A DNA stretch of 64,000 nt from contig CM119376.1 of NCBI GenBank assembly GCA_051294905.1, positions 24,118,001-24,182,000 on the forward strand, read 5' to 3'. The notes beneath the pieces are model-generated. The model searched no databases and had not been told where the DNA came from. It saw only the letters and a list, made by a program, of their open reading frames with translations. Of this stretch, positions 1,964 to 61,900 are shown one piece after another. The position numbers were made by a program, and so were the translations under genes. The first letter of the stretch is position 1; the number at the start of each line of letters is the position of its first letter. The stretch is from Botryllus schlosseri (taxonomy: Eukaryota).

Positions 1964-2353
1964 CTTGCTTCTCATTTTTTCAGCGAAAAGAAATCCTGAA
2001 ATCGTCAAACTGAACCCATAGCAAACAGGTGCAATACACCAAATGAGACCCAGCGACGGGGAGTAGACTGTTTCGGCCACACCGTTGATTGATCCTCCTC
2101 CAACCCATGATGCTGATAAAATATTATTTTGATACTTACACATCAATGTCACTCGTCACCTCACAAACCGTCAACGTAATTCACCAGTCATTGTACTAAT
2201 CCCTAACCACAGACCGATATCTTTAGCCCCTACAATCATTAACTCTGCAGGCTTATCTGCTTTTCGATTTTCCGTGAATTTCGCAGCCAATATCCCAACC
2301 AGTGCAATGACCAAGTAAAAAAATACTATTGATATTAGTAGGATGACGTCCAT
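1964..2353 (-). CDS. SLC5A7: SLC5A7/CHT1-like solute:sodium symporter paralog, exons 1-2 only (remainder presumably left of the window, or a truncated copy)
   Basis: Exon 1 2353-2185 (MDVILLISIVFFYLVIALVGILAAKF...GAKDIGLWLGISTMT), 72-nt GT-AG intron, exon 2 2112-1964 (ASWVGGGSINGVAETVYSPSLGLIW...KMRSK) then a GT donor. Exon lengths (169, 149 nt) equal those of the copy at 47880. Matches the CHT1 N-terminus (GGRDIG...ATWVGGGYINGTAE). Confidence 0.85.
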
Positions 2354-10000: not shown

Positions 10001-11035
10001 GTAACTATTCCAGTGTTGTAGTGACATATTCAGCCTGGCTATGGTTATTTAGGTAGGGTTACCATACGTCCTCTTTTTTGACTTTTTTGAAAGTGTCCTC
10101 GGAGGACGCCTTTTTGTCCTCTTTTTTGAGATCTTGTCCTCTTTTTTGAAAATTTAGGTAATATTTAGAGCAAAATGCGAGTGATATGCTGTAAATTAGC
10201 ACAGAAGTGACGCTCCGGCTGGGCGAAAAGTTGCCGTTTTGTTGCCATTTTCTTTTTTTTCTTCTTTTTATTAGTCAACCACCAGCAATGTGGAGAGAAA
10301 AGCGGTATTTTGAGCTCTGAGCGAAAAGTTGACCCCGATCACAAAGTGGGAAAAATTTACCGATTTTTGAGAATTCTTCTCCGGTTTTGCAAGTCTCAAA
10401 TTTCTGCAAAAGTGTCCTCTTTTTAGATTTCCAAAATATGGTAACCCTAATTTATGGACCCATCTCCCACACGGGAGATAAAGTTGTTTGATTTTAGTTT
10501 GTTGACACATGGATTAAATCCAGTATCGTAAACACTGTTAAATCCATGGACTGTGTATGCATGACGGGTATACTCAAAATAATTTATTTCACAGGGAGCA
10601 AGCCTCGTCGTGTATCCGTTATTGTCTTCCATCAATAGAAAATTTCAAGAGCTCCTGAAGGCATTTCGGCAAATAACTGAAATACAAACAAAGCAGCCAT
10701 ATCTCTGGGTGGTTTCTAGCCACGATGTGACAATGGGTCCTTTGTTCACCGCCTTGCAAAAACTGTCGTTGAGGAAAGTTCCCTACGCCACTCGCCTTGT
10801 TTTTGAACTCTGGGCGGATGAATCAAGCCGTCATGGATCAAGTTCCAGCGAAGCGAAGTCTCAAATCAGAATACTTCTGAACGGTGAAGATATCTCCAAA
10901 CAAACTTCGATATGCAGGCACTGTGATGAATCCGGATTGTGCACACTAGACTGTTTTTCTTCCTTCCTCAATGTCACGTTTTTTAAAAATATAAATGAAG
11001 TCGATTTTCGTACTGCTTGTAACTCCTATCCATAA
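7002..11035 (+). CDS. PXYLP1: 2-phosphoxylose phosphatase 1 / acid phosphatase-like 2 (histidine phosphatase, type II membrane)
   Basis: Exons 7002-7107, 7165-7290, 8981-9159, 9218-9383, 9449-9954, 10595-11035 are all GT-AG and phase-consistent (1524 nt, 507 aa). N-terminal hydrophobic anchor; catalytic RHGDR motif; SHDVT; ATRLVFELW and IRILLNGEDI match PXYLP1 (AARLIFELW, VRILYNGVDV). AATAAA near 11109. The start codon is the least certain element. Confidence 0.88.
10054..10449. mobile_element. MITE with TAGGGTTACCATA termini in PXYLP1 intron 5
   Basis: TAGGGTTACCATA...ATATGGTAACCCTA inverted termini and internal GTCCTCTTTTTT repeats. TSD not clean. Confidence 0.75.
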
Positions 11036-24200: not shown

Positions 24201-27200
24201 TGATATATTTATATATCAATCTTATATAAATTCCGTCTATTAAATGTAATAGTTTATGGGGTCATATCACTTGGTAATCACAAATCTTGGTTTGGAAACT
24301 TCTGAAACAAGTTGATTGTTAATTATAATTTGCTGTCCCTTTGTTCTTTTTATTTTCAACCGGTGTTATCTCATAATTCATGTGTTACGTGGTATGAATA
24401 GATCGTTTTTCTCTCGCCGCTGCATCAATCGTCGTTAGTTGATCAGGACATACTAACTGTTGGTAATGACAAGGGCTGTAATTACTCGAGTCATGACTCG
24501 ACTCACGATTTTCTGATGACTCGACTTTACTCGAGTCATTTTCTCAAAATACGGAAATGACTCGACTCGAGTCAACTGTTAAAAGTGAGGAAAATTAGTA
24601 TATTATAAATGCGAACCATTCGATATCACCAACAGAGTTATAAAAAGTGTGTTCAACAAGACTTTAACTGGAAACTGAGCAGTCAACACAATGATTGGAC
24701 TCGAGTCATAATACCATGACTCGGACTCGACCTTCTGCTCGATAACTTGGAGTCGGTGATGAATTGAAAATGACTCGACTTGACTCGAGTCAAAACTATA
24801 AAAATGAGATTGACTTGTGACTCGGAGCCTTGTGACTTGGTTACAACCCTGGTAATCACAACCTCGTCTCGTGGTTGGGTTATATGCAAGAAGTGTAGTC
24901 GTTATTGGTTGTCATTTTGTTGTTCTTTCCTAAATATTGCATGTTGTTATCTCTTACGTACATTAGTTTACATACAAAATATATTGATAGGCATTATTAA
25001 AGTACGTTGTTATATGTGTGCCCGATTGTGTGTGTTTATGAGTTTTTGGGGCTGGCGGGCGTGATCTTTTTCCCGATTGCCCGACATTTGAGCACGGGAT
25101 TTATCAAATTATCCCCCACCACCACTCTGACCCCAACCCTAACGTAATCTGAGAAAACCTTAACCCACACTTTTTTCAACAAGAATAAGTGACGCATGCT
25201 TAAGTGTGCCATGATATAGTGTCACATTCTTATATGCCTAGTAGTAGGGCTGGGCACAATGATTCAAGTACTCGAATCTGAATCGAGTATTAATTTTAAT
25301 GATTCGAGTCGAGTAGTAAAAGACCATTTTTTCGAGTATTGAAATTCTACGCTCCTCGCAACTGAAAGTTAATTTACTAACGAGAATTATAGTTTTGATA
25401 CTATTTTCCACCGAGGAAGCCTTGAAACCTCAATGGCCGTGTCGCAGCATACGAGACATAGTACAAAGCTACGAACGTTACTGGAGATATCACATTTCCG
25501 AATTCGGTGAAATCGGAAATCGGAAAAAAATGAAATCGGTATGGTCGGAAAAATACCAAAGTATCTTTAATGTGACGGATAACAGGCATTATGTTCTTTG
25601 TGGTGGTTTTAAGAGGTACATATTTGAACTTTCATATGGCACATTATGTCGTGACGTCATAATGAGTGATACTCGACTCGACTCGAGGCGTTATACGTGA
25701 TTCAGAATCGAATCACTCAGGTACTCGATTTTGCCCAGCCCTACCTGGTAGGCATTTTCCGTGTAATAAATTCGACCCACTCGATCTGCAGACGTTCCAG
25801 AAAGTTCGCAGCAATCGCATCGACCGCTTCAACAGTCGCGTGGGCAGCTCACGGCGGTCGTCTTTTGCCTTGCCCGGCGGCGCGGGCGAATTCCGCGAAA
25901 AAGTCAACGGCGTGCTGTGTCCGATATGCAACGCGTCGCTGTCGCACTTGAAAAACTACGAGGAGCTGTCGGAACACGTCGTGGCGTGTTCTGGACTAGA
26001 GGTAAAACAGTCGGTACTAGCTCTATCGCCTATTATATTGCGCCGTGCGTACAGACAGAGATGTTCAGTATCGAATTACTTCTGTATTTTCATATTACTG
26101 AAGTACATTTTACATACTTGCACGATATACGCAAGTGATCGTGTTTTAGATTTCTTCCACTTTTTCCAGACATAATTTTAGGCTAAATTTCGTGCGTTTG
26201 GCACTTTGATGGATCCCCGTCTACACCTTGCTTATCTGTACATCAGATTCCACTCCATTGCAACTTTGTAATGTATTCTATTGATTTGCACGGGTGACAA
26301 ATACACATTTTATCGATCTGTCTATATAGGTCTTCGGTCTTTCACGAATGAAACTGGTACACTAACTGGCGAATCAGCCCCGTGTATCACGGTGATGGAA
26401 TGCATTTTCGAAAATTGTAATTGTAATTTATAGTGCCATTAGTTATCTTGCGTTAGTTGCGAAGACGCGTGTTGCAATTCCAAACTGTTAGACCAGTGGT
26501 TTCCAACCTTTATCGACTCATCGCCCCCTTATCAAGCTCGACCATAATTTCCGCCTGTCATATTTACGAATCCGAAAAGAGGACGTATAAACGGGAAATT
26601 TGCTCACCTAACTCTGAGATCGCCGGTGAATTGGGTAGGAAAAAATTCTCGCTTTTTCGAGACTTTTTGTTTGGTCAACTTTCGGTTCATATGCAGAATA
26701 GGCCGTCTTGGCGTTCATTTTTTAGCCGTGTTAATTAAATATATCTCACTGGAGGTTTTAATACGTTCACCCCCCCCCCCCCCCCTATCGCCTTGACGGT
26801 TACCCGTGAACTCGGCATTAGCAGTGTAATGACTATTATTGTTACGAAGGCGATGCATCAATGCTGTATTAATAAATTCGAAAATGAATATAACACAGAA
26901 TATTAGTGTTGATTTTGATATATGTCACTTCACTTGGCATGTATGTATTAATGTAATCACTAATCAGGTTAGGTTATGTTTAAGGGTGGAGGTTAGGGTT
27001 AGGGTTAGAATTAGTAGTCGCCAAGTGACAAATTCAACATTCCGACCCTGATGTGCGTTGAAGTATTCTCTCGTCTCCCGACAGAACGGGGCCGAAGGCC
27101 CGACGGGTCGGTCGGGATCTGTGTCGCCTACGACGGTCGACGTCGACGGCGGCGGGTTCGAGGAGTACGAGTGGTGCGGCGAGACGAGGATACGCGCCAC

Positions 27201-32980: not shown

Positions 32981-34659
32981 TATTATATATACGACTCTGC
33001 GAATGAAGCGCGAGCACGCCCGCTACACTTGGCGATCTCTCAAAGCATGTGTTCTCAGTCAGACTACTTCGTCAATAAGATTAAGGTCGGGGGAAATGAG
33101 GTTGGGTACAGGGGTGCGTGGGAAGATTATTGGCACCCTGCTGAGACAGCTGCTACAAAAGGCTTCATTCAAATCAAGACACCACAGAATTTCGACACAA
33201 TGACATGATAGAGAGGTATCGAAACGACTTGGAATTCCATAGACTACTCCTTGTCGCTTCGACATCTTCCTGTCTTTTCATTGTATCGCATTTTTGTGGT
33301 GTATTGAACTGATAAAATTGCTAATAAACCAATGATGAATGATGATGATGGAATAGTCTTTGAAATCAGGCACCCACCCGGGCCTAGGCGATGTAAAGGA
33401 GAGGGACGGCGTGCCTGGCACGCACCTTACCCAGCACACTGAATGAAAAGTAACAGAAGAACAAGCGAAAAAAATGAGGTGACATCTGACGGAAGGCGAG
33501 GTCTATATAACATATCGTGGTCCTGTAAACTCGGGCGCTGAGTAGTATTTATCAATTATAATTAGGGTCACCATATTTTGGAATCCGGAATAGAGAGGAC
33601 ACTTTAAAAATCATAAAAAGTAAGTTTTATTAAATTGAAAACAGCTGATTTTGAAATATTTACTAGAAATCTTGTTGTGTTGACTGAAAAAAATGGTCAT
33701 CACATTGACTCAACTTCCGAATTACCCACTTTTTACGATACTTTTGTGGTGTTGACTAAAAAAGGACGTGTGCTTGCTAACCTTATTCATAATTGGTATC
33801 CAGAGCTTAGTTCATGGTTGCTGAGCGCAAAACTACGATAAAACAAAGTGACGAAACAATGAATAAAGGGATGAATGACGTGAAAGAGTAGCAGTCAATA
33901 ATTAAAGTGCAGGCTACTATAGGAAATTTATAGACATTATAGAAGGCTGGATGAATTGTCATACACAGCCTACGTCCAGACGACGTAGTAGTCCAGTGGT
34001 TCTCAGCCTTTTTGTCTTCGCGGGCCCCTTTTTGACCATCACAGACCCCGCGAAGCCCATCAGGTTTTAGTTCAATTATCATGCAACTGTCATCTGTCTT
34101 GTCGAAATAATAACTGTAGGCTTGTGATTAACAGCAACAAAATGACTTATCTTGAAAATAACATCAAGTGTAGAAATTGGGTAGATTTTTGTTACTTCAA
34201 AGCGAATTTTGCAGCTGTATTTCTTCAAGTACGACGACCATGTATTGACAATCCGCGTCTTCGATTTGTTATGAACGATTGCCGAAAATCCATTGCCACA
34301 AAGATAGGTGGAGTCGAATGTAATACAAACGCGTGACGCTTCCGATGACACTTTCGTATGGCCGCAAAATGAGGCACCAATATTGAGAAACATGTTTTCA
34401 ATGAACATATCACGCCTAGTCATTTTATCATCTTGAAGTTATTCTGGAATATTGGTCATATAGGCCTATATCACAGCAGAGGATTTCGTAGCAACATTTC
34501 AATCCCTTATGGCTTATTGGGACAGATTAAGAAAAAACTTCAGGAATTTCGATTTCAAACGACTGCTGTGAGTCCTGAGGCTTTAGCAATTGTGGAGCGA
34601 AACTGCCTCGCGCTTTCCCTGATTTAACATAGTTACAAATTAGGCTATCAATCATTCAT

Positions 34660-37600
34660 TCATTCGCGGACCCCCCGAATGTGCTTCGCGGACCTTCGGT
34701 TGAGAACCGCTGTTGTAGTCAAATTCAAGCCGCTATCATTAAAATTATCTTCTCTTCGATTGACCTTGAAGAAATCGTACCGACTTGGTATATATTCCTT
34801 CTTGAACAACCATCGGGACATGTATGAAACAACCACAGTCGTCGTAAAAGTCATTAGCATGGCAAATGTCTTGACAGGGAAATTTCTGCCGCCAATATAA
34901 TTGAAGGTGGGAGGTAAGTCAAGCAGATATTCTCCAGCTCCGATTCGAAGAGTAAGTCCTATCACGATTCCACAGATAGTTCCGTAAGCATTGGTGTTGA
35001 GATACAGAGAACACACGAACTGGCAAGGAAATTTATATGATTATAATTTACAAACAGCAATTCAACACGTCTAATTTTTACGCTGAGGCATTTCACGCAT
35101 ATTATCACATGTGTGCAAAAACAGATGTCCTTAAAACAGGGTCGCTTAATAAATCAATCCACGCATCAATCAGAACAACCCGAGAGTGTCAGAGTCAATT
35201 AGAGAGATACCAAAGGTATAGAAAAGGAAAAGGGTTATTTTCATTGCATCATCGAGGTACTGGGTCGATGGACAATTGGACATTCAATTGAATGCAATTT
35301 CATCATTTCAATACGCCACAAGTGCGTGCGAGGTTATCACGTCAGCACAAGCATTTTCCCTCTCCTTTGTGGCCTACTGACTACAAGCACCGTGCTGACG
35401 TTTTTAGTCTTCACGTCATAATATCAGTAGCCTATACTATTTAGTCACTTTTTAAAGATTCCCTAGATTTGCAGAGATTTTCTTTTCTACTCAAATTTGC
35501 TTCCCATATGTATCACGAGATTTTCACGAACGACGATAACTCACTTGAGGCCAAGTCAGCAGGTACGTCAGGTCGCAGCATAGAATGTACAATATCATGA
35601 TTGACTTCACTTTGATGGCGATAGTTGCGGAACCGACCCCGAAAAATACAATTGCTGCTCTTATCGCCCATGTAATTTCCCGCTCAGATGCCTGTATTGA
35701 AACGCAACACAGCATCACTGCATCATCAACAATAAGAAGCACTGTGTGTGTAGTCTTGGATTCGCGGGCTATTCTAAGGATACCTTTTATGCTTTGATTT
35801 GATTACCGGCATTTCCATGGGCAAGAGCAATATGCAATATGCATACGATCAATAAGCATCAACGTGCCCTATAGCTGTCGAGATATAGATATTGATATAG
35901 GCTACTACGTATGGCAGTACATCTCACCATCACCGAAGGACACGAATGTTATTATCATTATTAGAAGTTTTGGGTGGCACTTATCACCTGTCATGTAGGG
36001 GCAACATATTTTGGAATCTGGAAAGAAGGAAAATTTTTTCAAATTATAAGAGTTAGTACACCGAAATTGGAAACAGCTGACTTTGAAATATTTACTGTAA
36101 ATCTTGTTGTGTTGACAAAAAAAGGTCAGCACTTTGACTCGACTCGATACTTTGATTTGAAATCTCAAATTTTGAACATCAATAACTTCGTTTCTACTGG
36201 TTCGAATTGAGTCAAATTTGTTGTGCATCGTTTTTTTGTTCATACAATCTAACAATTTCATGGGGTAGCCAGTAAAATTTGAAGAACAATTATATTTATT
36301 TTTATTAAGGGGGCACACCTCTTTAAAAATGATTTTTTTAGGTGTTCACGTTTGTAGTCATAAATTCGTAAAGGTAGATGCGAGCCCCATGATTCATGCA
36401 TTGCTGGAAAGGGCAGGAAATTTCCTTTCCAAATATGGTCTTTATGTTGTACCATGAGCATGTACCCCACCGGTACACTTACTCAAAAAAACATGAAAAT
36501 ATTGAACACGCGTATTAAAAATCCTAAAAACTCAGAAGTCTTTCAAGATTTTCTTTCAAATATTGCTGTAGTAATAGTACATATATATATCTACAAAACA
36601 ATTGAGGGATTTTCAAAAATAGGTTTTCTAACAAAATTTATGATATTTTTTGTCAGCGAACCCTAAATTTTCATTTTTTTCAAAATTCTTTCCTCTGTAA
36701 AAATTTTTCTGGACAAAATTTCTTGAAAACGCTCAATTATTTTATTATACATACCCTAACCATCATTTGTGCAAAATTTCAGATGAATCGAACAAGCAGG
36801 TGCCAAGCAGATACAATTTTTGTGCAGAAAAAGTGTATTTTGAGAAAATCGCGTTTGAAAAAATAAAACCACTATAACTTCGAAAAACAAGGATATGAAC
36901 ACTGATCATGACATCAATGGCCACATTAGTTGATTTGCATCACACATTGAACCATATATAACACAACCTGAGCATTAATAGCCGCCAGGCACATAGTCTG
37001 ATGTGTCTTAGGACTCTTGAACTCTTTCAATTTTTCACAACGAAAGAGCGTCGAGATGCAGTCTTTCTTTTTTTGTCCTTCAAACCAGCTTGATTTTTTT
37101 GAAGGTGTTCACTGGCAAGTTTAGGCTTTCAAGAACACTCAAGTATCCACTACATCCAATATTCCAGTTCAGTACGGACGTAGCTACAGCACGTTTTACT
37201 GCCATAGTTCATAAGTACGTTTTCTTCGGGTACCTTGTCCCTATGGTCACGACGAATGACTCATTTTGGGTTTTGGTGAATTCACCAATGCATCTTTCCA
37301 TTTCAAAGATTCTTCTAAAACTCTAAATTTCCTTGATCGACTCATTCTAGGCAAATTGATAGCTAGAAATGAAAACCAATCCAAGACAGTTATCCAGATA
37401 CAATAAATATTACCCAATATTGTCAGTCAGCAGTCAATGAATAAAAACAGATGAAATAGGAAAACACACAACCTCCATCTCGACCATTTCCTTGGTACTG
37501 AATCAATGAAGCAGCCAAGTATATGAAAGCAGACATGCTAGAACACTTATTTATAAACATACAATAAATACTAGCCAATATGGTCAGTTATCAGTCAACA

Positions 37601-40600
37601 AATCAAAAAATAAATGAAATAAAAACAGCCTCACCTCGCCTGTTTACTGAATCTGTGAAGCAGCCAAGTTTATGAAGGCAGACTGGCTAGAACACTCATT
37701 TCAAGCTCTACAGCAGACATTTCGCCAGGTGGCGCTATTTCCTTCGAATTAGAGATCATATAAATCAGAAGTTTGCTAGCTTTTCGTACAAACCAATATG
37801 AGGCCTCTAGGACGAGCACAAATTAAGATATGATCATATGAAGTTGTTCAATTTGAGATTTTAAAAGGGTTAAGAGGCTGGCGCGGTGCAGTAAAACCAC
37901 GTTTGATCGTAGTGCAACAGCGTATGATGTTTTACATTGGCAAAGCTACTTGATTCGACACCATATTTATGCTCGTGTCTGAAACTTTATCTGACCATTT
38001 GTGTTTCAATTGCGAGTTGTGTGAGGAGCTTCTCAAAGCTTAAACTGATTAAGTCTTGTTGACGTTCTACCATGAATGATGATCGGCTATCGCTCTATGC
38101 ATTCTGTCTATAGAAAGAGACTACGTTCAAAAACTTGAATTTGAGGATAGTATCGCTGATTTTGCTTTGAGGCGGCTAGTAATATTATATTTTCGCAATC
38201 CATTCGTTCGCTATTTCTTGTCATATTATTTTTGACCTTATTAACGATCAGACGGCGAGGCGATACGCGGCATATTATTTGTAATTATTTTTATTGATAA
38301 GATTGTTTGAACGTGAATCTGTCGAAATTTGCTGCGATCTACTTAAGGGGGCGGCATTTTAAGCGAGAGCCATGGGCGGCAGCAGATGCTGCTACGCCAG
38401 TGGTTCACACCATCCCTGCTGATTATTGCCGTTCGCGACTCTGTGTACTTGTCATTATTATGTCACAACGACAAAATTATTTCTATATTTCGAACTTGGT
38501 TAACCTCATTTACTGGCGTTCACTGCTGAAGAGAGCAAGTCGAAAAGCTTCCAGTGGAATAAATTTGGCAATATGAACGTATTGTTTGCTGCAAGCTTTA
38601 TTTCTTGAAATTGAACACTTGCTTTTTTACATCAACATGTATGTTATCCAGACAAAAAACTGATATTAATTAGAAATCAAAATATATGGTACTGGGAATT
38701 GCAAGTGAAATCTAAATCTAAAAACGGAACATGTATTTCACGTATTTGGTCCAGAAAGTTTCGAAGGTTGGTATGCTGAAACAGCTCTAAAACTAAAGAA
38801 AAGTCAGAGTCCACTTTTCCAGATTAGGACACGCCATGAACAGCTAGATTACGATATGATAAGTAAATGCTAGATTGCGAAACATCAGTTTCAAACATTA
38901 TGACAAGCCATATATACTGTGATGAATTATCTCATATGGGCGAAGGACGACAATATGGTGTGAACGGAACCACGCCAACCCGCGCCCTAAATTATATTCG
39001 CCGATACTTTCGTGAAATCATACAGGTCACTCCGTATATCCACTGCGCGCGAAGCGCGACGAAAATTCTTCGCTGTACTCAACTTTTATGAAAATTAAAT
39101 GTTGATACTCCGTGAAAACAGCCCCGAAATTACTCAAGCTATCTTCCTGATTGGAGGATTAAACTACTTCTACTTGACAAACTGAAAATAGCGAAAAGTA
39201 AGTAAGTAGATCACAAAAATTATGAAGTAGAAGTAGAAGTAGTGAAATTCAGATCTACTTGAGTAAGTACCAGAAGTAGAGGAAAACTACTTGAGTACTT
39301 CGAAAAAGTAGAAGTACTTTGTTAATGACCACCTCTGGTTATGAGACAATGTAGTGGGTGCCTAACCCAAAAACTTGACGTGATGGAGAAAAACGGAAGT
39401 CATTTTTGAATTCATCGCCCAAAAGTTAGTCGAAATCATTTGTCTGATCAAAGTCAACAAAAAATCTGTTGACCAGTGTTATACTAACTACTCCGGCTAT
39501 ATGGAAACATCCTCTCACTACCTGTGTGTGATTCAGGCAATGCTCTGCAGTGCTTTTCTTAACTCACCTTTGGTCTCAACACTGCATGATACACATTCCT
39601 TCCGAATTCAGATCCAGCAGCCAGCCCCGTTGCGTCCGCCGATGACATCACAGCCGCAGAAACCGCACCCACGCCGAAAACGCTAACCGCTTGCGGAGTG
39701 AGGTATCGAATGACTATCGGTAGGATTTGGATTTCGCTTCCCACGTCTGCTGGGGAAACTCCAGACCCATTCATGTAATCGGTTAGTGTCCAATCTGCGA
39801 GAATATCGAGAGCACCGTCAGATCACGCAACGCGTCTTTGATATATTTGCGGTCTACTTGTGGATGTGGCAATTCCTCCAATCAGAATCGACGGTATCAA
39901 GAAGGCGATTGCGAGAAGCCCGCTGCATACGGACACTATCTTTGCGTTCCTGGTACTATTTATTGCTAGTATCCGTTGAAACACCGCTTGAATTGGTACC
40001 GCGCCGAACAACTGTTGCACCGGAACTGTTAGGTTTGGCTCTCAAGTAATCTATGGGAAATATAAATACTACTCACAGTGGAAAAGATGATGTCGACATA
40101 TGGACCTGCGGTGTCCGGATCCCACTTTCCAACCCAACTGTTTTCGCCATAAAACGACTCGCTGATACTTCCGACAGCCTCGTGATAAAATACGAACGGG
40201 ACTGCAATAACCTGAATCGAGTACGATGGGTGAAATTGAATAGCCTCCACTAGCAACTATTCTTAATGTAATACGTCGCTATGAAAACAGCAACTGATTC
40301 ATAGAGAGCCATAGCTGGGCGGTTCTGGAAAAATAGTCGCTGACAGGCAAGGGTGGACGGTAACCACGTATACTTCTACCAATCCTACTTTGCAACCTGT
40401 CCTACTTCTTCGACTGAATATACTTTCAGAGTATTTATACTTGCACGAAGTAATATTCGGATATTTGCATCAACGTAATCAGTGAAATTGTTGCCACAAC
40501 CGGGCATTTATAATACGATCAATCATTCTTCGTTTGCCGCAAAATGCACCTGGCAATTTCATGAACTTGTGAGCGGATATTGACTAACAAAAGTATGCGA

Positions 40601-43600
40601 CGCTTTGTTCCAATCTACTTCTTCGAATTAATTTAATATAGAAAAACTTTCCTACCATTGGTTTTATGCTTAAAGTATATTGTTGAGGTTTTGAGGTTCT
40701 GAGGTGAGGAACTTGCAATTGGGTAGATATTTATGACATTACTCCTACTAGTAGGCTTAGTAGCAACTAATTCTACTCGTATCATCAATGGTTATACTTT
40801 TACGGACTCTTTGGCGATATTCCATCTCGCATTCAAGCTTATCTATTCTATAATAGTATAAATATATACCATTCCCAGTGTGACGAAGATCAGTTGAATG
40901 ACATCGGTGTAGGCGACTGAGTATATTCCTCCTATCAGCGTGTAGAGCGTTGCTACCGCTGCGGATGAAATGATGGATGCCTCCCGTGACAGTCCTGCTA
41001 CCACTTGGATAGTCGAACCTGAAAGTACGCAATGCAAATCAGATCGGGCTGTTCGTACAAATAATATATCATATTGCCCGTATACAGGGCACTGACAAGA
41101 CTTTAAAGCAGGGGTTCCTAAACTATAGGTCGCGACCCCAATGGGGTAGTTTGCCTATTCTCTGGGATAGCGGGGGTGTAAATGAAATACCATTGACTAT
41201 TACAAGAATGTCAGTTAGGCGGATGCTATCGGCGGCTAATTTATGAGTATTTAGGTTCATTTCTCAAAATAGAAGAAGATATGACATCTGAGGAATGCGA
41301 ACCCGACAAACAGGGTATCAGATCAGTCGAAGTGTCGTTTTAAAAGCGCCAAGCGCCACCTACTACAACTGATGGTCGGTGTCTCGCCATCACTATGAAG
41401 ATTAAAGTGTCGGGAGTATAATAAAAACCAATAAGACGGTAATTTTTCTTTAAAAAAACAGCCAGTGACCGGTAGTGCTTTGTGTTGACAGTATATAATA
41501 CATACGCACGCCCACGGCCTCGATCGGCGCGGCCGAAAAACTTATAGATCGTTATCTGTATTTCACGTGACGCAGTATTTCACGTAGCAGTATTTGACTA
41601 TGCTTCGATTGGATATAGATAGCAATCGTTTCAAAAAAGCTATATGCAATCATACATCGTTATTGTCTTGGTTGAGTTTCTTATGTCAAGGACGTAGGTT
41701 TACGAGTTTATAATTGCCAATACTGCGCACATATATGCCAGCTTCACACATGTAGGCCGTGAGTAGGGTTGGTTGACGTTGGTGATCAGTTTTTAGTAAT
41801 CAGCACGCCAGATTGCGAGGTGGGATCGCGAAACATATCCAAAGCGAAATTCGGGGTCGCGGCCGTAAAAAGTTTGTGAACCCCTGCTTTAAAGCGGGGG
41901 AGCAATTAACTATATAATTCCACGAACAAATATTCTGATATGAATTGTATTTAAAATATGTTTCGGCATGATTAGGCCTACATAACAATCGATAATTTCT
42001 TGAGTATTTTGTTTGACTTCTGAGTGTTTCTATTACCTACCAAGTGCATTGAGTATTGATCCCACAAAAACAATTCCTCCAAACATGTCAATACAAAAGT
42101 AGAACACGGTAAAATGCTTTCCAAGTGACTCCTCGAAAGGGTCTAAGACGGTGAGGTAATTCTGTAAAACATTGAAATGATAACACTCAGAGGTGGTCAG
42201 TAACGAAGTACTTCTACTTTTTGGAAGTACTCAAGTAGTTTTCTTCTACTTCTGGTACTTACTCAAGTAGAGCTGATTTTCTCAACTTCTACTTCTACTT
42301 CGTCATATTTTGTGAACTAGTTACTTACTTGTCGCTATTTTCAGTTTGTCAAGTAGAAGTAGTTTAATCGCCCAATACGAAAGATAGCCCGAGGAATTTC
42401 TGGGCTGTTTTCACGGAGTGCCAACTCAAGTAGTTTTCTTCTACTTCTGGTACTTACTCAAGTAGAGCTGATTTTCTCAACTTCTACTTCTACTTCGTAA
42501 TATTTTGTGAACTAGTTACTTACTTGTCGCTATTTTCAGTTTGTCAGGTAGAAGTAGTTTAATCGCCCAATACGAAAGATAGTCTGAGGAATTTCTGGGC
42601 TGTTTTCACGGAGTACCAACATTTAATATCCACAACAGTCAAGTAAAGCCCAGAAATTTTGTTGCGCTTCGCGCACAGTAGTTATGGAGTGACAAATATG
42701 TTTTCACGAAAGTATAAGTGAATATAATTTAGGTACCGGATTGCTTCGTTCCGCTCACACCACACTGTCGCCCGTATAAAATATTTCACCACGGTAAATA
42801 TGGCCCACCGTAACGTTTGAAACCACCGTTTTGCAATCTAGCAATTACCTATCATTTCGTAATCTAGCAGCCCATGACGTGTCCTGCTAATCTGGAATAT
42901 CCGACTTTTTTTAACGTTACACCTGTTTTAGCAGATCACCTTTGAAGATTTATGGACAAAAGACATGAAATATATTTTCCGCTTTTTAGAAGTGGTATTT
43001 GTAATTAACTTTCAATTCCGAGTATCATACTTTGAGTTCTAATTACTTTCAGAACATACACGTTGAAGCATAAAAGCAAGTGTAGTATGCCTCTATTTTT
43101 CGAAAATAAAGCTACGCTAAATATAACTTTTACGATACAATATTTGTTATTAACGTATACTAATCGCGCAAAGTGTTGAAACCGTATCCAATACAACTTC
43201 TCCGTATTGCTCTTCGGCTAAACTTGGGGTCTTATAATATGGGGTAGGGCGCCATGCCATGATATTCTCTAAAACGGGATCTTCTAGTGAACAAAGGGTT
43301 AGTATCGCATTTTCATATCAATACTATAATTTGCATCCATGATGCGAAGAATGCTTATTCTGTCAAAATTGATACCTCTTGGATCATGAAATTGACCTCT
43401 TTGAGATACTCAATGCGAATCAAGCTCTCTGCACTTTCCACATAGCTCAATTAGCAGCCTTTGAGACCTGTAATTAGAGACATAGACTTTTCAAACTACT
43501 TACTTACTTGAGTAGATTTAAAGTCAGTCGATTCTACTTATACTTCAAGTAGTTTTGGATGGCTTATGGAATAAGTACTTCTACTTGAACTTGAGTAGAT

Positions 43601-46600
43601 TTTTTCGTCGCTACTTCTACTTCTACTTGAGTAGCTTTTTTGACTACTTTGACCACCTCTGAAACACTTTAGCACCTGCACAGTGTGCACACCTGCAAGT
43701 CAACTGCAAAAATATTCAGAGTGTCTCGAAAATTCAATGCCAAACCGAAAATCTACGCCTGATTTGTAGGGTTCTGGTAAAAATCATTTTGCCTCTAATT
43801 AAAATCACTCTTAATCGAAACAATAATTGAAATCATATTTTTTATGGTTTTTACTCATGATAAAAACAAGGAAAGGACACGGGATGAATGAGGATCATGT
43901 CAATCGAGGGCATTTGAGCGGGATGGCATTTGTCTTGTGCGATGTGGTTGAAATTTTCTTTCTCTATTCAGTTTGCAATTAATGTCCAATTTCATCAACC
44001 TCGTTACTAATAACAATGATTGCTGATACCGTCAAATCCTATTATATTTATTATTAGTAATTTTAAGAGATGTTTGAAAGCACTTGTTTTCATATTAAAG
44101 AAGTTGGAGTCGGAGTCAGGAGCATTTTCACAAACTCCGACTCCGGCACGTATTTTTTTCACGACTCCGACTCCAAGGCGCTCTAAAAATAGACTCCGTC
44201 TTCGATACCCCTGATACAAACTGTATTCACCGGCGAGTTGACTAAAAAAAAAGTAAATCTTTCGGCTCGACCTCGAAATTACACTTTTACAGCTAAATGT
44301 TCGTGAGTTGACTAAAAAAAGGTCATCTCTTCGACTTGACTCCTATATAAACGTTTTAACGCGCCATCGCCCCCTTCGTTATTATCGCCCCCTATCGCCC
44401 CCTTCGTCCGTTTTCGCCCCCCTGTCGCCCCCTTGGTCATTTTCACCCCCCTAGACCGCCAAATCGCCCCCTGGGGGCGATATCGCCCACGTTGGGAACC
44501 ACTGGTCTAGGGTTACCATATTTCTGTGACTTAAATCCCGGACACTCTTTAGCGCCCACTAGAGGATTTCAAAATGAGGTATGAGCACATTGTATGAATA
44601 TGACGTCACACTAGCAAAGCTTTGCTTATTGACCACAGGTGGTCAGGTCACGATCCGGTTCTAGAGTATATGGCTGTGTGTTCTGTAAACAGGACTGAAA
44701 CCACATTTTTCAGCCCCCTCCCACCCAAATTAACAATGATTTTGGGCCCACCACAGGGTAATCGATGTAACTTCTGGGGGGATGCTTGCTATATGTGTCT
44801 GGTTTCTATATGCATCTGGTCGTAAATTATTTGTAGGGACTCTGTCAATAATATTGGTTCTTCCATTTATTACTATATAGTTTGATCCGATCCCCGCCAA
44901 CATGATCAGAGTTAGCGGTTGAACTGGTGGAGGATGATGACTACAAAAATACAGGGATCATGGAGCTTTATAAACAGCCCACATTCGTTGGTTTCCCACC
45001 TTTTATGGTCGCGACTCCATCTCCATAAGTTGAAAAGGTTCCATTGCACAGATCAAAATTTGACGAGCTGATTACTAAAAGAAGTCAGAACATTTGCCTG
45101 GACATACTCACCGGCTATTTAGGAAGATGATTACGTTCAACATCTTCGCGAACCCCAGAATAAAGGCAAACGACCACCACATTTGCAACCACTATCTTTG
45201 AAAAAAGCATTTAAGCGGCTTAACCGTCTCTAGAAATATACCGTTCTCCTATAATTGCGAGTACAATTAGGCTTATTTCAGTGAATGAAGGTTATTATTA
45301 TTTATTTTTTATTGCAGTTTTGGCGAGGGTGGTAGTCCCACTAATGAAATCAATATATTTGATAGTAAATTGCGCATAGCGCGAAGAAAAATTTCATGTA
45401 GCATAAATCTCACAAAAAATAAAGTTATTATGTTGATTAACGAAAAAAAATTTGAGCCCACGTCAAACCTTCAAAATTCCGGACATTAAATCATATTATA
45501 GAAATTCTCCCGGACGCAATTTGAACAGTGAAATTCCGGACATGTCCGGGAAATTCCGGACGTATGGCAACCCTAGTCTAAAGGCAATTTTAGGAATGGT
45601 GTGAACCTCTGAAAGGTTCAGGTTCGTGTGAATGCGAATCTTTTTGAAATGTTCTGTGTGAACGCGAAAGTGAACCTCATGACGTCACGTGACGTCATAT
45701 TGCTAATTCCAATCCTACATTTTAGCGAAGTGATAGCCTATATTGATGTACGTACACGATACCAAGCGACGACTCGGGCCACTTGATGCCACAATGTTGA
45801 AGTACATATTGACGTTTTAAACGTTGCCACATGTTTCAATAGGGGCAATCAAATGTATAATACTCCCATAAAATCAATGTATTCCGTTACTTTGCCAACA
45901 ATTTCGACGAGGACTTGCAAGAAATATAAGCTTACGCCTTGACGGTCTTCGCCAGACCGGACAATGTAGTCGGCGTCTGAGTATTGCTACGTTGATATTG
46001 AACAGAGTGTAAAATGGGTTTCCCTACTTGCTACCGATAAACACCACTAACAAGTTATACAGCAGTAGCCAACACCCCAATCGCACGGATTGGGTTTTTA
46101 TGATACAATAAACAATGAACATCTTTAATCAAGATTGACCCCATACGCCTGCTAGATTTTTACATCAGAAATCGATATCAATTTCATTGATTGGTTGAAT
46201 AAGCATCATTCGCTGACTACCTGCTCTATTTGTATTGTAGTATATATTTCGCTCTTGGTGTTGTGTGATTGCGGGTCAAGCTCACAGCAGAGAGTCACTA
46301 AATACTCGAGCAAGCTTTTGTAACAAAGCAAGTAAAAATTTTGAGATTGTCAATGCGCATGCTCGTTTAGTGTCGATTTTTTTCATACTGCCAGCATCAT
46401 GCATATAGTGGCCCGCAGTTGAAGTGCAATAAATTCCAACCAAAGATGTTATAACGAAGTGAAAATTGTAATATATCAAAAAGGTTCGCGGTCCAGAAGC
46501 TACCAAGGTTCGTTTGTGAACGTAAACCTCTAAATTTCTGAGGTTCACACACAGAACGCGAGCGTGAACCTCACGTTCACACCATCCCTAATAAGTAGGC

Positions 46601-47880
46601 TATGTCACAGTTGTCACACGCGCGTATGGACGTCGTCCAACTACCACAAGGTAGACAAATAAGACAATCGCTCTATCAAATATGCCGGATCTGATTTGTG
46701 GAACAGTATATCTCTCCCGCTATCCGACAATCATCGAGCATGTCCACATTCAAGTCAAAATAAAAAATAAAAAATAAAATTTTTACTGAATAAATACTAG
46801 TTAATCCTCTAGTCTATCGGACCACGACCTGACATATCAATCTCACTTTCCGACACATGCTACCCTTTTTTGTCACCTGTCTTTTTATGTTATCTTCTTT
46901 TACTTTTCATTCAGTAGGTGTTCCTCCTTTTTTACATCGTTTAGGCAAGGTGGGTGTCTTATTTCGAAGACTACTGCAAGTCGTTTCGACACCTTGCTAT
47001 CTTTCATTGTATCGCAGTAATGTGGTGTATTGAGATAATGAAAATTGTAGCAATAAATTGAATTGAATCATTGATGATATCTGGAGTGGTCTCTGGATGC
47101 GAAAAACTCTTTCCCGTCTATGTACATTGTACAATGTACAATGTACAATGCATATGGTAGTCACAAAATATACCACATTCATGCATCTCTCCAAAAAATC
47201 AAACAGCCACAAAAATCAAAAAATTCAGCACGGTGGAATTAAAATTTGAAATCAGGGGTAAGAACCTGAAATATATCGCACTGATTTAAATCAGCCTGAT
47301 TTAAACCAGAACCTACTGATTTGTATGCAACGAAACGAACGCATCATTACATATTTACATATTTTAGTGCCTGTTTAGATTGTACTGTAGCCTACTATGT
47401 AGGCCTATTATTAAGTATGGGCTACATATACGTTTGTTAGTGTATTTTGTTTTATGGAAATAGCACCGAAATACTATATTAGATCGATTCTACCTTGCTT
47501 CTCATCCTATCGGAGAATGCCAATCCTGCGATTATCAAACTGCATCCGTAGCAGACAGGAGCTACGCTCCAAACAAGACCCAATGATGGAGAGTATACTG
47601 TCTCGGCCGCACCATTCAATGTTCCACCTCCAACCCACGATGCTGAGAGATAAATAGAGAGTTTACAAATTATATATGTCATTTTGGCTCTAGTATACAT
47701 ATGTCCCGTACCTGTCACTGTGAAAATTCCCAGACACAGCCCGATGTCTTTGGCGCCAACTATCATTGCCTCTGCAGGTTTACTAGCATTTTGATTTTTC
47801 GTAAATCGAGCTGCCAATATCCCAGCAGCAGCAATAAGTGCGTAGAAAAACGCGACGGAGACGAGCAGAATAACGTCCAT
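34660..47880 (-). CDS. SLC5A7: Complete SLC5A7/CHT1-like solute:sodium symporter (divergent), about 536 aa
   Basis: Exons 47880-47712, 47642-47494, 42161-42041, 41018-40870, 40211-40077, 40011-39858, 39794-39568, 35691-35545, 35019-34660 are all GT-AG and in phase (1611 nt). CHT1 motifs GAKDIG, ASWVGGG, LDPF, YSVAYTDVIQ, QAVFQR, GAVSAAVMSSAD, FPVKTFAM. The 3' end of the last exon is uncertain. Confidence 0.92.
37415..37873. repeat. Two diverged ~160-bp tandem units followed by a piggyBac-like end (AAAGGG|TTAA)
   Basis: GAAGCAGCCAAGT.TATGAA.GCAGAC.GCTAGAACACT occurs at ~37508 and ~37658; AAAGGGTTAA at 37864-37873. I found no matching left end. Confidence 0.4.
41109..41886. mobile_element. hAT MITE in SLC5A7 intron 3
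   Basis: CAGGGGTTCCTAAAC...GTTTGTGAACCCCTG; perfect TSD CTTTAAAG. Confidence 0.88.
42188..43661. mobile_element. TACTCAAGTAG-family element with an internal ~195-bp tandem duplication
   Basis: CAGAGGTGGTCAG...TGACCACCTCTG termini; 42229-42423 is repeated at 42424-42618; interior shared with 3200-3976 and 4525-5340. Confidence 0.87.
44508..45575. mobile_element. Non-autonomous hAT-like element, TAGGGTT(A/G)CCATA termini
   Basis: TAGGGTTACCATATT...CGTATGGCAACCCTA. The left end, the 45055-45180 interior and the right end all match 50017-51848 in reverse orientation. Confidence 0.8.
45591..46590. mobile_element. ~1-kb non-autonomous TIR element with GTGAAC subterminal repeats
   Basis: TAGGAATGGTGTGAAC...GTTCACACCATCCCTA inverted termini; clustered GTGAAC/GTTCAC motifs at both ends; no convincing ORF. 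Confidence 0.7.
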
Positions 47881-48306
47881 ACTTCCGACAGGACGATTCA
47901 ATGTCGCAATGCAACTGAGAATTCGTCAAATATGTATCATACCTCTGTGCCCGAATAAAACGTTTCAGCGCATAGATGAGGTTCATAACAAAATTCGAAT
48001 ACCTTCCGATTTCAACGGAAGTGCGACAAAAAGTAGTTTGCATGCGAGTTGGATGTAATAAAATTTAATTGAGTATACGATTTCTGGCATTGCGAACTGC
48101 AAATCGTATGTTCGCATAGCTCAATAGTCTATACCCGCGTTCTCGACCGCCTCTCCGCGTCAACTTTCCTGTCGGTCTGCAAATATATCACAATTTTATA
48201 TGTCAATTGCAAAATGCAAGGCGTTGTAGGCTGGTCCATCAACAAAGGGGCATTGCATGCGCTGTAAATGGGATATGGTCTCAAATTAAATAAGTAGCCT
48301 AGAGGT

Positions 48307-48563
48307 GCGTAAAACATTTTTGTAAAACCCATCTCCTCAGAAAGCTACCATTCTATAACTGCAGCGAAATATTTTTTCTAGTATCTATAAGCGCAGCTGG
48401 ATTTCAACGTCAGATATATAATGATATTAGTATAGCGTAAAACAGTTTTGTAAAAGCCATTCTGCTCAGAAAGCTACCATTCTATAACTGCAGCGAAATA
48501 TTTTTACTATAGTATCTGTAAGCGCAGCCGGATTTCCACGTCAGATATATAATGATATTGGTT
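48307..48563. repeat. 128-bp tandem duplication upstream of the SLC5A7-like start codon
   Basis: GCGTAAAACA...CAGAAAGCTACCATTCTATAACTGCAGCGAAATATTTT...GTCAGATATATAATGATATT starts at 48307 and again at 48435. Confidence 0.85.
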
Positions 48564-58900: not shown

Positions 58901-61900
58901 CTTCTGGGCTTTTTTAGAAGACCAATCAACCGGATCAGATGGCAAGGAGGGGCCTAGATAAACCTCCAACGCTTTGTTATGAATTTTGGCGTCGACAATA
59001 ACTGTGGAATAGGACTTTGACAGCTATCTGACAGTACTCGAGCATGTCCACATTATATATATTAGTCAGTCCTGAAGATTACAAGACCATGATCTGACAT
59101 ATGCCATATTCATTTTCATCTCTTGTCCTTATATGTTATCATCAACTGTTACTTTTCATTTAGTCCGTACTATACATGCCCCTTACATGCTCCAGGCCAT
59201 GGGTTGTCAAACTGTAATCTACGGACTAGTTTGAAGTGGTCCATGAAATGACAGTGTTGAAACATAAAATATACAGAACTACGTTTTCCTTCATAAGATG
59301 TCCTTGTTTTGCCAAATTACCAGCGCTCACGACCATCTCAAACGCCACACGGAAGATACGATACTAATAATTGCACTCCTTCTGGCAATCAGGTCGCTTT
59401 TTAATCATTGGGAGAAAAAGATTTAGAGGTTCAACCTAGCAAAAAGGTTCCGAACCGCTGGTCTAGGTCTTTTTATTTTATCGCGATCTTGTGTTTTAGA
59501 ATTTATCAAAATTTCAATAAATGTCTGATTGTTGAGCATCAGACGGTACAAGATGTCTGAATTCACATATTTTCAGCCTCACCCAAGGAATTTGCATATA
59601 CGCACATTAATTTTGAGTGTACATAATTAAAAAAACATTGTAGTCCGCTTCAGGCTTATCTGCAAATGGTAAGACGGAAAATAGCAAACGCACCAAGAAA
59701 ATGATCGGAGGAGATCCCATAAACGCGATCGCCGCCGACAGTTTCCTCTTATTCCCGCCGCTGTAGGTGCCGGCAGTTTTGAACGCGTAATGCTTCAATC
59801 CCAGCTTGTTGATGCCCCAACGAGCCACGTCATCCACCTCTTCGGGTGGCACGCCGCGCAGTCTCGCATAAAGTTGGAGATGTTCGAAACCTTGATAGGG
59901 AGATGTGATAATTGTCATCACAGAATCGGAACTGTGACTGGAGCGTGATCGATACGAAAATGTAACATATTACAGCTACAACATCTACTAATTTGAATAT
60001 TTGATTTACTTACAATAAAACTCTAGCTGACTACACATAAACATAGACTAGAGATAGGAGAAAGGAACTAGCACTTCCAGTCAATCAGGAAACACAATAA
60101 TTTGGGATGTTTGCAGCAAGGAATGAAGACAACATTTAACGTGCAAACAGCACAGAAGACAAAACGATGACATTATCGGCCAATATCAATGTCTCCGGAG
60201 ACGGATATCAGACAGGCTCTAGCAGCGATGCTAGTAATGGAATTGGGAGGTAATCCTACAATATGAAGGTCTGCAAAATCCACTTGTCCAATCATGCGTC
60301 TTTCAAAGACAAGTCAAACTCAAATGCTTAGATTTGTAAAACCCAATCATTGACACCGACATCGTTTATGAAGCAATTTTATGGAAGCCACCGACACATT
60401 GTCGAGACAGAGGCCTAGTTTTCCAGTTAGCTAGAGGATTATAATAACAAGTACGAGCCGTTTTGACATTTCTTGGCAATCGCTGCTCAATTACTTATAT
60501 TCGAGAAGAAATTAATGTCACTACTTCAACTTCTACTAGAATACTAAAGCTTACTACTGGACACAATGGGCAAAGAACAAAATGGATTACACCAAACCTA
60601 GCGTTATTTCGCACTTGCATTTGACCAATACATGTTATCCCAGAACAAACCGGACTCAGAATCCCAACACCGAGCAACAACAAACCTGTCAAGTGCGAGT
60701 TCAAGGCGTCAAACTGCGGGCAGTAGCCGCTGCTCTGCTGCACAACACGTATGGCGTCTGTAATGCTGTTGCCTAAAACTGTGGCGTTGCCCGCGGTCGG
60801 TTCGATATCGCCGGTCAACATTTTGAAGGTGGTCGTCTTCCCGGCGCCGTTAACCCCGAGCAGCCCGAAACATTCTCCACCCGACACGGCGACATTCATT
60901 CTACAATAGGGGTGGGGAATTATTTTTCATAAAAGAGAGGCAGAAAATATTGTGGCGGGCAGAACCAAAGTTATAGTATATTCTGTGGCGTGTTATTTTT
61001 ATTTTAAAATCAAAAGCAGAGATTGACCCTGTTCACACAGGCCGCTAGGTAAGGGGTAAGTGAGCGTTTATTTAGTTGGTTAAGTTAATAAATTAAGTGA
61101 GTAACATAACAATGAAGAAAAACACGGTTTGAACTACAGTGCACGAAAACAGTAACGGTGAAGTTGGAATCATCATTTATTCAAGTTGACCAATCCAAGT
61201 TTATGCAGACAAGAATTTTGCAAATTTCACATCAGTTTTTTATGTTTTTATGAGTTTATGTGTCATATTCAACTTCAGCGTTCATGTTTTCGTATAGTAT
61301 AGCAATAGTTGCCATTGCTGCATTGGTAATTTAAAGGTCTGTGACTTCAACTAGATAGGTTTCATTTTGAATCTGCATTTCACATACGTAGTCCACATAC
61401 TAAAGACACATGAATAATCACTAAACAGGCTTTGAAGAAGCCTACGGCTTTAGTGTACGGTGATGGACTCACCTGTCGACGGCCAGAAGCGATTTTTGAA
61501 ACGGCCCTTTCTGGTATACTTTGCTCAGGTCGTCGACTCGTAGAATCTCGGAACCGTCCAACATGGTTTTGACACGGATCCTTTCGGCGTCGACGTCTTC
61601 GTCCGAAGACACGCTGCTCTGTGCGGCGTTCGCTATTCCGGACTTCGATCGCCATTTGAACAAGTTGAAAAATCTGTCAAAAATAACTTGTCAGGGGGAT
61701 ACGTGCACACAACTAATACTACTGGTAAAACGCGATTGACTCGGCACAACAACATCCGACAGAGCAATGGTCGGAAACCTGTGGTAAGTCAAGTAGAAGT
61801 GCCACTTGAGTGAGGAGAGCAAGTAGCCAAAACCTACTAGGAGTACCTCAAAAAGCAGAAGTGCTTTGTTAGAGCTATTTAGGATGCTGTGCGGTCAAAA

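Follow-up and report, generated by a model that had tools for sequence, protein, structure and literature searches.

The stretch of DNA analysed here, called the window below, comprises 64,000 nucleotides of the Botryllus schlosseri genome (C6:24118001-24182000 within a 495-Mb assembly). On its minus strand, at 34660-47880, lies a complete gene of nine exons that belongs by descent to the SLC5A7/CHT1 lineage of choline transporters, and in whose product the Na2 sodium site of CHT1 is intact and four of the six aromatic residues that surround choline are replaced. A tandem paralogue with the same exon structure runs across the start of the window, and six further divergent genes of this kind are found elsewhere in the genome, along with a canonical CHT1. 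These features led us to consider the window gene a probable Na+-coupled transporter with a substrate other than choline.

The gene and its transcripts

The exon boundaries were established by six-frame translation of positions 34000-48500, followed by reading of the DNA at each boundary. The resulting coding sequence of 1611 nt encodes 536 residues with zero internal stops, and all eight introns, which are 69, 5332, 1022, 658, 65, 63, 3876 and 525 nt long, have GT..AG ends. A sequence-only reading of the window had proposed a complete, stop-free frame of nine exons at this place, and its start, end and exon count proved exact. Membership of the protein in the SSS family (PF00474) is evident from full-length blastp matches, at 35-46% identity, to proteins that all carry this domain, and a six-frame search of the genome recovered PF00474 directly on exon 4 (C6:24158765-24159025).

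Residues of the spliced protein were assigned through a MAFFT alignment of 134 sequences, namely the window protein itself and 133 family proteins, including a mammalian CHT1 representative of 580 residues (P0004). Given that P0004 matches the human CHT1 chain 8j74_A over positions 1-580 with 1252 bits, the human numbering is valid, and it is used below unless window numbering is indicated. As an independent check, single exons were compared by phmmer with the CHT1 chains in PDB; the exons carrying the positions of W62/Y91, W141, W254 and W406 all align ungapped.

In what follows the window residue is given first, with its human counterpart in brackets, and all exons lie on the minus strand. 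Exon 1 (47712..47880) begins with the ATG at 47880 and encodes residues 1-56 plus one nucleotide, among them K44 (R47) and D45 (D48); it matches human CHT1 residues 8-61 in phmmer and is followed by the donor GTACGG. The unwound loop of transmembrane segment (TM) 1 and TM2 are encoded by exon 2 (47494..47642), with W59 (W62), the VGGG motif, T64 (Y67), E70 (E73) and Y88 (Y91), in a phmmer alignment without gaps to human residues 58-109. Exon 3 (42041..42161) corresponds to TM3 and contributes D131 (A134) and F138 (W141); its alignment to human residues 111-149 is ungapped and colinear, with the Phe opposite W141, and the E-value taken alone is weak (0.78), the exon being short and strongly diverged, but its placement is also backed by the full-length MAFFT alignment. 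The best-conserved block of the protein, YTLIGGIYSVAYTDVIQL, is encoded by exon 4 (40870..41018), which holds D185, the equivalent of D188 in the human Na3 site. Exon 5 (40077..40211) encodes an extracellular loop and the start of TM6, with I237, S240 and T241 at the positions of hemicholinium-3 contacts (S243, L246 and L247). The unwound segment of TM6 follows in exon 6 (39858..40011), with I248 (W254), the retained Q253 and R254 (Q259 and R260) and A257 (S263); it aligns without gaps by phmmer both to human residues 250-298 and to residues 293-337 of the bacterial transporter sfCHT, with the Ile opposite W254 and W298, respectively. TM8 and the Na2 site lie in exon 7 (39568..39794), which carries A340, S343 and S344 (A343, S346 and S347) as well as D346 (D349) and A347 (S350). 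Exon 8 (35545..35691) spans TM9-TM10, with M400, Y403, I404 and C407 (Y403, W406, Y407 and S410), and its ungapped phmmer alignment to human residues 372-420 sets the Tyr opposite W406. Exon 9 (34660..35019) encodes TM11-TM12, including E447 (E451), and a short C-terminal tail that has no alignment to the tail of canonical CHT1, and ends in the stop TGA at 34662-34660.

Direct evidence for splicing comes from run X1 (Logan contigs), in which one contig joins positions 35690|39567, skipping 3876 nt whose ends read CT..AC on the plus strand and hence GT..AG on the strand of the gene. This joint is the predicted junction of exons 7 and 8, and it therefore confirms the splicing of intron 7. Exons 7 (with 1 mismatch), 8 and 9 are covered by further X1 contigs, of which one stops exactly at the exon 9 acceptor, 35019. 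In the bulk RNA sequencing run X19, of which about 6% was read, a few reads fall on exons 8-9, at roughly 0.3-0.75x depth, and zero on the unique intron sequence flanking these two exons.

Two of the longer introns show features of their own. Intron 2 contains, at 42229-42620, a 195-bp unit in two tandem copies that are 97% identical; 68 nt separate this duplication from the exon 3 acceptor. In public runs the 3.9-kb intron 7 is covered very deeply and unevenly between about 36100 and 39470 (up to about 25,000 in word depth), with many reads that fit partly, a pattern that suggests high-copy repeats or transposon fragments.

The substrate pocket and the ion sites

In CHT1 six aromatic residues surround choline: W62, Y91, W141 and W254 form a cation-pi cage, Y67 and W406 complete the shell, and uptake is lost when any of the six is mutated to alanine (PMC11589582). 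Chloride is bound by the backbone of 63-VGGGY-67 together with the indole N-H of W141, the Na2 site is made up of A60, V63, A343 (backbone), S346 and S347, and the Na3 site of D188, D349 and S350; Y403, W406 and Y407 constitute the extracellular lid, and L246, L247, W406 and Y407 the contacts of the inhibitor hemicholinium-3 (PMC11589582). The exit pathway is lined by R47, Q259, R260 and S263 (bioRxiv 10.1101/2025.09.30.678764).

Set against this background, the window protein retains W62 and Y91 as the only ones of the six aromatics, the others having changed as Y67T, W141F, W254I and W406Y. Hence the cation-pi cage of functional CHT1 has lost two of its four members, and in the outer shell and lid all four residues (Y67, W406, Y403 and Y407) are replaced, the lid itself by Y403M and Y407I, with S410C in addition. 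Further changes affect the hemicholinium-3 contacts (L246S and L247T, with Ile also at S243) and the exit pathway, where R47K and S263A are found beside the retained Q259 and R260. At the chloride site the VGGG loop is kept and the side-chain ligand W141 is replaced by Phe, which has no hydrogen-bond donor. The Na2 site is intact, A60, V63, A343, S346 and S347 all being identical (the latter two in the motif VMSSAD), and in the Na3 site D188 and D349 are kept and S350 is Ala. D48, V63-G66 (VGGG), E73 and E451 are likewise conserved.

The sequence-only reading had named D48, W62, Y91, the serine pair of VMSSAD and E451 as kept, and Y67T, W141F, W254I, W406Y and Y407I as changed; MAFFT and the per-exon phmmer comparisons bear out all of these assignments, and add Y403M, L246S, L247T, S410C, R47K, S263A and S350A. 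It had also described the cage as W62/W141/W254/W406, which is right for the first three, W406 being a residue of the shell and Y91 the fourth ring of the cage (PMC11589582).

These substitutions are a property of the protein and not of its alignment. The MAFFT alignment with 133 relatives and the ungapped per-exon comparisons with solved CHT1 structures agree at every key position, which rules out an alignment artefact, and when the sequences are properly aligned no Trp is regained at 141, 254 or 406. Across the 134 sequences Trp occupies position 141 in 129 and position 254 in 126, the exceptions being a few duplicated or long-branch sequences. The substitutions in the window protein are thus not a chance pattern. 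The same counts rule out that invertebrate CHT1 orthologues commonly carry such changes, and the canonical CHT1 proteins of both invertebrates and vertebrates lack them.

A canonical CHT1 and eight divergent paralogues

The whole genome was searched with the canonical Styela clava protein P0153, and gene models were built from the matches exon by exon with attention to phase. Ten complete genes of the CHT1 lineage were recovered, each with an identical nine-exon structure. One of them, C7a (C7:3203579-3220023), is a canonical CHT1 with the cage complete: it has all six aromatics, in the pattern DWYYWWYWY, and exon by exon it shares 66-84% identity with P0153. At C6:27.775 Mb lies a second copy, near-canonical, which keeps W62, Y67, W141 and W254 and shows Y91L and W406F. 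With these two genes present the window gene cannot be the sole CHT1 of the species, and the separate canonical copy that the sequence-only reading had suggested looking for does exist.

The remaining eight genes, namely the window gene, C6n, C6b, C15a, C15b, C9a, C9b and C9d, are divergent, and each is closer to the window protein than to anything in the protein databases. C6n is a tandem paralogue on the minus strand, whose first two exons lie within the window at 1964..2353 (exon 1 at 2353-2185, exon 2 at 2112-1964) and whose full span, C6:24107605-24120350, extends past the window start; it encodes 521 residues in the same nine exons, is 71% identical to the window protein and carries Y67S, W141F, W254L and W406F. 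The other six complete divergent paralogues and a 3'-partial copy, C9c, which consists of exons 7-9, are situated at C6:25.515 Mb, at C15:6.80 and 7.02 Mb, and at C9:0.49, 0.59, 0.62 and 1.20 Mb (loci L031-L053, a set that also takes in C4). At C4:4.285/4.295 Mb there are two fragments resembling exon 2, in inverted orientation to each other. Some splice donors in these paralogues are non-canonical, with GA at exon 3 of C6b, GC in C9b and C9d, and AT at the conserved end of exon 8 in C9a, where the nearest in-frame GT is 15 nt downstream.

All eight divergent paralogues lack Y67, W141, W254 and W406. What replaces these residues and their neighbours in the lid is of one type: T, S or A at position 67, F (three genes) or Y (five genes) at 141, I, L, V or M at 254, M (seven genes) or L (one gene) at 403, Y or F at 406, and I or L at 407. 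The Na2 site is held throughout the clade, A60, A343, S346 and S347 being invariant and the backbone ligand V63 being Ile in five members, a conservative change. At Na3, the window protein and four other paralogues have Ala in place of S350; S350 and V63I are the only variable points among the ion-site residues.

Phylogeny and selective constraint

To place these genes we computed a tree with IQ-TREE, with bootstraps. The tunicate CHT1 proteins form a clade (100/99) that is sister to vertebrate CHT1 (98/86). Within the tunicate clade the C7 gene falls together with P0153, the canonical protein of Styela clava (100/98), and the eight divergent paralogues form a clade of their own (100/100), whose sister is a second Styela clava protein, P0023 (100/99), and whose stem is very long (0.71 + 1.22 substitutions per site). 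The exon boundaries and phases of the window gene match those of the canonical paralogue over all nine exons. This shared exon structure, together with the nesting in the tree, establishes that the window gene belongs by descent to the SLC5A7/CHT1 lineage.

The ratio of nonsynonymous to synonymous substitution rates (dN/dS, by the pairwise Nei-Gojobori method) is 0.137 between the window gene and C6n, at a dS of 1.36, and among the more recent duplicates it amounts to 0.20 for C15a/C15b and 0.23-0.26 for the C9 trio. Values in this range, 0.14-0.26, indicate that the copies are under purifying selection. Across 122 canonical proteins, conservation reaches at least 93% in 170 columns; 99 of these are retained in all eight paralogues, and about 40 are altered in at least six of the eight. 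Many of the altered columns lie around the pocket, in TM3 (126-141), TM6 (247-263) and TM10 (403-424), and among the changes of the clade is the gain of an acidic residue at human position 134. Among the eight paralogues themselves no signal of pocket diversification was seen: variation affects 11 of the 13 positions in the pocket or vestibule and 62% of columns overall (Fisher p = 0.14), and the pocket changes between them remain inside the same residue class.

Other features of the window and the genome

Beyond the transporter genes, the minus strand of the window has at 60498-60899 an open frame with a match to PF00005, the ATP-binding domain of ABC transporters (E = 5.6e-14); this frame probably represents one exon of an adjacent gene for an ABC transporter. 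On the plus strand two open frames give weak Pfam matches, that at 25666-26172 to RNF220 (25 bits, just below the cut-off) and that at 10610-11032 to histidine phosphatase branch 2, where the C-terminal end of the domain scores 26.7 bits and a faint DDE-transposase zinc finger comes after it. Elsewhere in the genome, clusters of weak PF00474 matches to about positions 110-180 of the profile were recorded at C11:13.40-13.57, C8:13.07-13.10, C9:11.43-11.59 and C14:16.39-16.52 Mb; these disappear when the genome is searched with a CHT1 protein, and may be other expanded genes of the SSS family.

A probable transporter with a rebuilt pocket

To our knowledge, the SLC5A7/CHT1 lineage is so far known solely as a choline carrier, with a cage conserved from bacteria to humans. 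With a probability that we put at roughly 0.6, the window gene encodes a Na+-coupled transporter with a new substrate and is not a high-affinity choline transporter. The protein would be a LeuT-fold carrier derived from the chordate SLC5A7/CHT1 by duplication within tunicates, which is predicted to retain Na+-driven alternating access, to have a wider and less aromatic pocket that would no longer bind choline with high affinity, and to have given up the chloride dependence of the CHT1 type. Its substrate would be another small solute; we would guess at an organic cation or zwitterion that is bulkier or more hydrophobic, since three to four rings (W62, Y91, and F138 and Y403 in window numbering) could still make cation-pi contacts. 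A constrained clade of eight genes with an altered pocket and a long stem fits the expected look of a neofunctionalised branch. Such a branch of the CHT1 lineage had been put forward in the sequence-only reading, and the eight-gene clade, the purifying selection and the canonical copy elsewhere in the genome support it, the ion coupling and the loss of choline being predicted from the residues.

Several observations weigh against this interpretation. The pocket geometry is taken from the alignment alone. The Ala at the Na3 residue S350 means that the ion stoichiometry may differ. In human CHT1 the single mutants W62F, W141F and W406F still take up choline, with an apparent affinity reduced about 10-fold and a Vmax reduced to about half (bioRxiv 10.1101/2025.09.30.678764), and by analogy with W141F and W406F some low-affinity choline transport by the window protein may survive. 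Spliced transcripts of the gene exist but their level is low, and the support from expression is thin: no reads on the gene came from RNA run X16, which belongs to the study that also supplied the best DNA match, X10, and one X1 contig is unspliced across the 63-nt intron 6, which holds an in-frame stop and has a weak donor, GTAGAC.

The human mutants bear on a reading of the window protein as a low-affinity, high-capacity carrier of choline or a close quaternary amine, serving for example nutrient or osmolyte uptake, which would make it a case of subfunctionalisation. The persistence of W62, Y91 and aromatic residues at 141 (Phe) and 406 (Tyr), the tolerance of the human protein to W141F and W406F, and the retention of E73 and E451 all speak for it. 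We nevertheless hold it to be unlikely, since uptake by human CHT1 is abolished by Y67A (PMC11589582) and by W254A (which is inactive, as is W406A; bioRxiv 10.1101/2025.09.30.678764), and the window protein is non-aromatic at both of these positions (Thr and Ile). W141F, W406Y and the loss of the chloride ligand come on top of this, and the alteration of about 40 near-invariant columns across the clade goes far beyond what a shift in affinity would need.

A protein whose pocket is heavily altered while its ion site and fold are conserved might also have no organic substrate at all, and act as a sensor (transceptor), as an uncoupled Na+ leak or as a regulatory partner of the canonical transporter; the low expression and the short C-terminal tail, unalignable to that of canonical CHT1, would accord with such a role. 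We regard it as improbable, given that eight paralogues hold the same type of pocket under purifying selection, that the retention of Q259, R260 and all the glycines of the TM1 gate is easier to explain by continued translocation, and that there is no positive sign of signalling domains. Least probable of these readings is a recently inactivated, decaying duplicate whose frame is open by happenstance, as might be read from the low expression, the retained intron 6, several weak donors, the non-canonical donors of two sister paralogues (C6b and C9a) and the partial copies on C9 and C4, but against which stand the stop-free frame of 536 codons, the low dN/dS against the tandem neighbour at a considerable dS, the family-invariant columns kept in all eight paralogues, the gene's own GT-AG splice sites and the use of the exon 7/8 junction.

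If the window gene is a Na+-coupled transporter with a new substrate, then the clade as a whole would be a tunicate-specific family of orphan transporters and not one of synaptic choline carriers. The broader proposition, that the CHT1 lineage of stolidobranch tunicates gave rise to a multi-gene Na+-coupled family with a rebuilt, chloride-independent pocket, a non-choline substrate and hence a substrate class new to this branch of the SSS family, we consider an evenly balanced one. CHT1 is treated as a single-function transporter, and a selectively maintained clade of eight genes in which the ion core is kept and the cage swapped would amount to a natural experiment on how specificity is rewritten in a LeuT-fold carrier. 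It would also provide eight orphan transporters whose substrates could be sought in the invertebrate group nearest to vertebrates. There is a practical side to this: tunicate relatives with an eroded cage carry the public name "high-affinity choline transporter 1-like", the present clade probably would too, and such naming would falsely label the cells that express these genes as cholinergic in tunicate single-cell atlases.

Comparison with known transporters

Over almost its full length the window protein is about 41% identical to human and other vertebrate CHT1 (SLC5A7; PDB 8j74-8j77, 8zqo-8zqr, 9bfi-9bfk and 9bim). It shares with them the fold of the SSS/LeuT family (PF00474), the W-V-G-G-G loop of TM1, the Na2 ligands, D188/D349, E73, E451 and Q259/R260, and differs from them in the replacement of four of the six choline aromatics, the loss of the chloride ligand and the changed lid and hemicholinium-3 contacts. 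The bacterial sfCHT (PDB 9rws/9rwt), which aligns with the window protein without gaps in TM6 and TM10, retains the aromatics of CHT1, in that its W99, Y126, W176, W298 and W445 correspond to W62, Y91, W141, W254 and W406 (bioRxiv 10.1101/2025.09.30.678764), whereas the window protein does not.

The canonical tunicate CHT1 proteins (C7a, Styela clava P0153 and Ciona intestinalis P0154) are 42% identical to the window protein, fall in the same tunicate clade and share with it the nine-exon structure and the intron positions and phases. They are set apart by a long C-terminal tail and by DWYYWW at positions 48/62/67/91/141/254 in all three; at position 406, P0153 and C7a have W and the Ciona protein has F.

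The nearest database protein is Styela clava P0023 ("high affinity choline transporter 1-like", UPI00193A9232), at 46% identity. A search of a 5.8-billion-protein collection, with P0023 and with a profile of P0023 and five window exons as queries, returned nothing closer, and a representative library of 1.84 billion held no full-length clade member outside this genome; the only clade matches in the latter are two exon-sized fragments from one Logan run, P0002, which resembles exon 1 of C6n, and P0008, which resembles exon 2 of C15b and has the motif WIGGGALNG. In the full-text literature on CHT1 structures and tunicate SLC5A7 paralogues we found no description of such paralogues. P0023, which is a single gene in the Styela clava annotation as far as searches show, shares in the erosion of the cage through W141Y, Y403F and W406A, and also has A134E and S263A; unlike the eight paralogues it retains Y67 and W254, and its cage is thus half eroded. 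This combination of losses and retentions indicates that the cage was lost stepwise.

Other duplicated copies of SLC5A7 with an eroded cage include P0156, P0161 and P0162 of the tunicate Clavelina lepadiformis and the vertebrate "CHT1-like" proteins P0246, P0029 and P0111. These have one or two cage substitutions each, such as W254A with Y91S in P0156, W141F in P0162 and W254Y in P0029 and P0111, with W62F and Y91S also occurring within the set, and none combines the loss of W141, W254, Y67 and W406 that marks the window clade. Relative to that clade they fall in a tunicate polytomy or are distant, and erosion of the cage after duplication may be a recurrent event.

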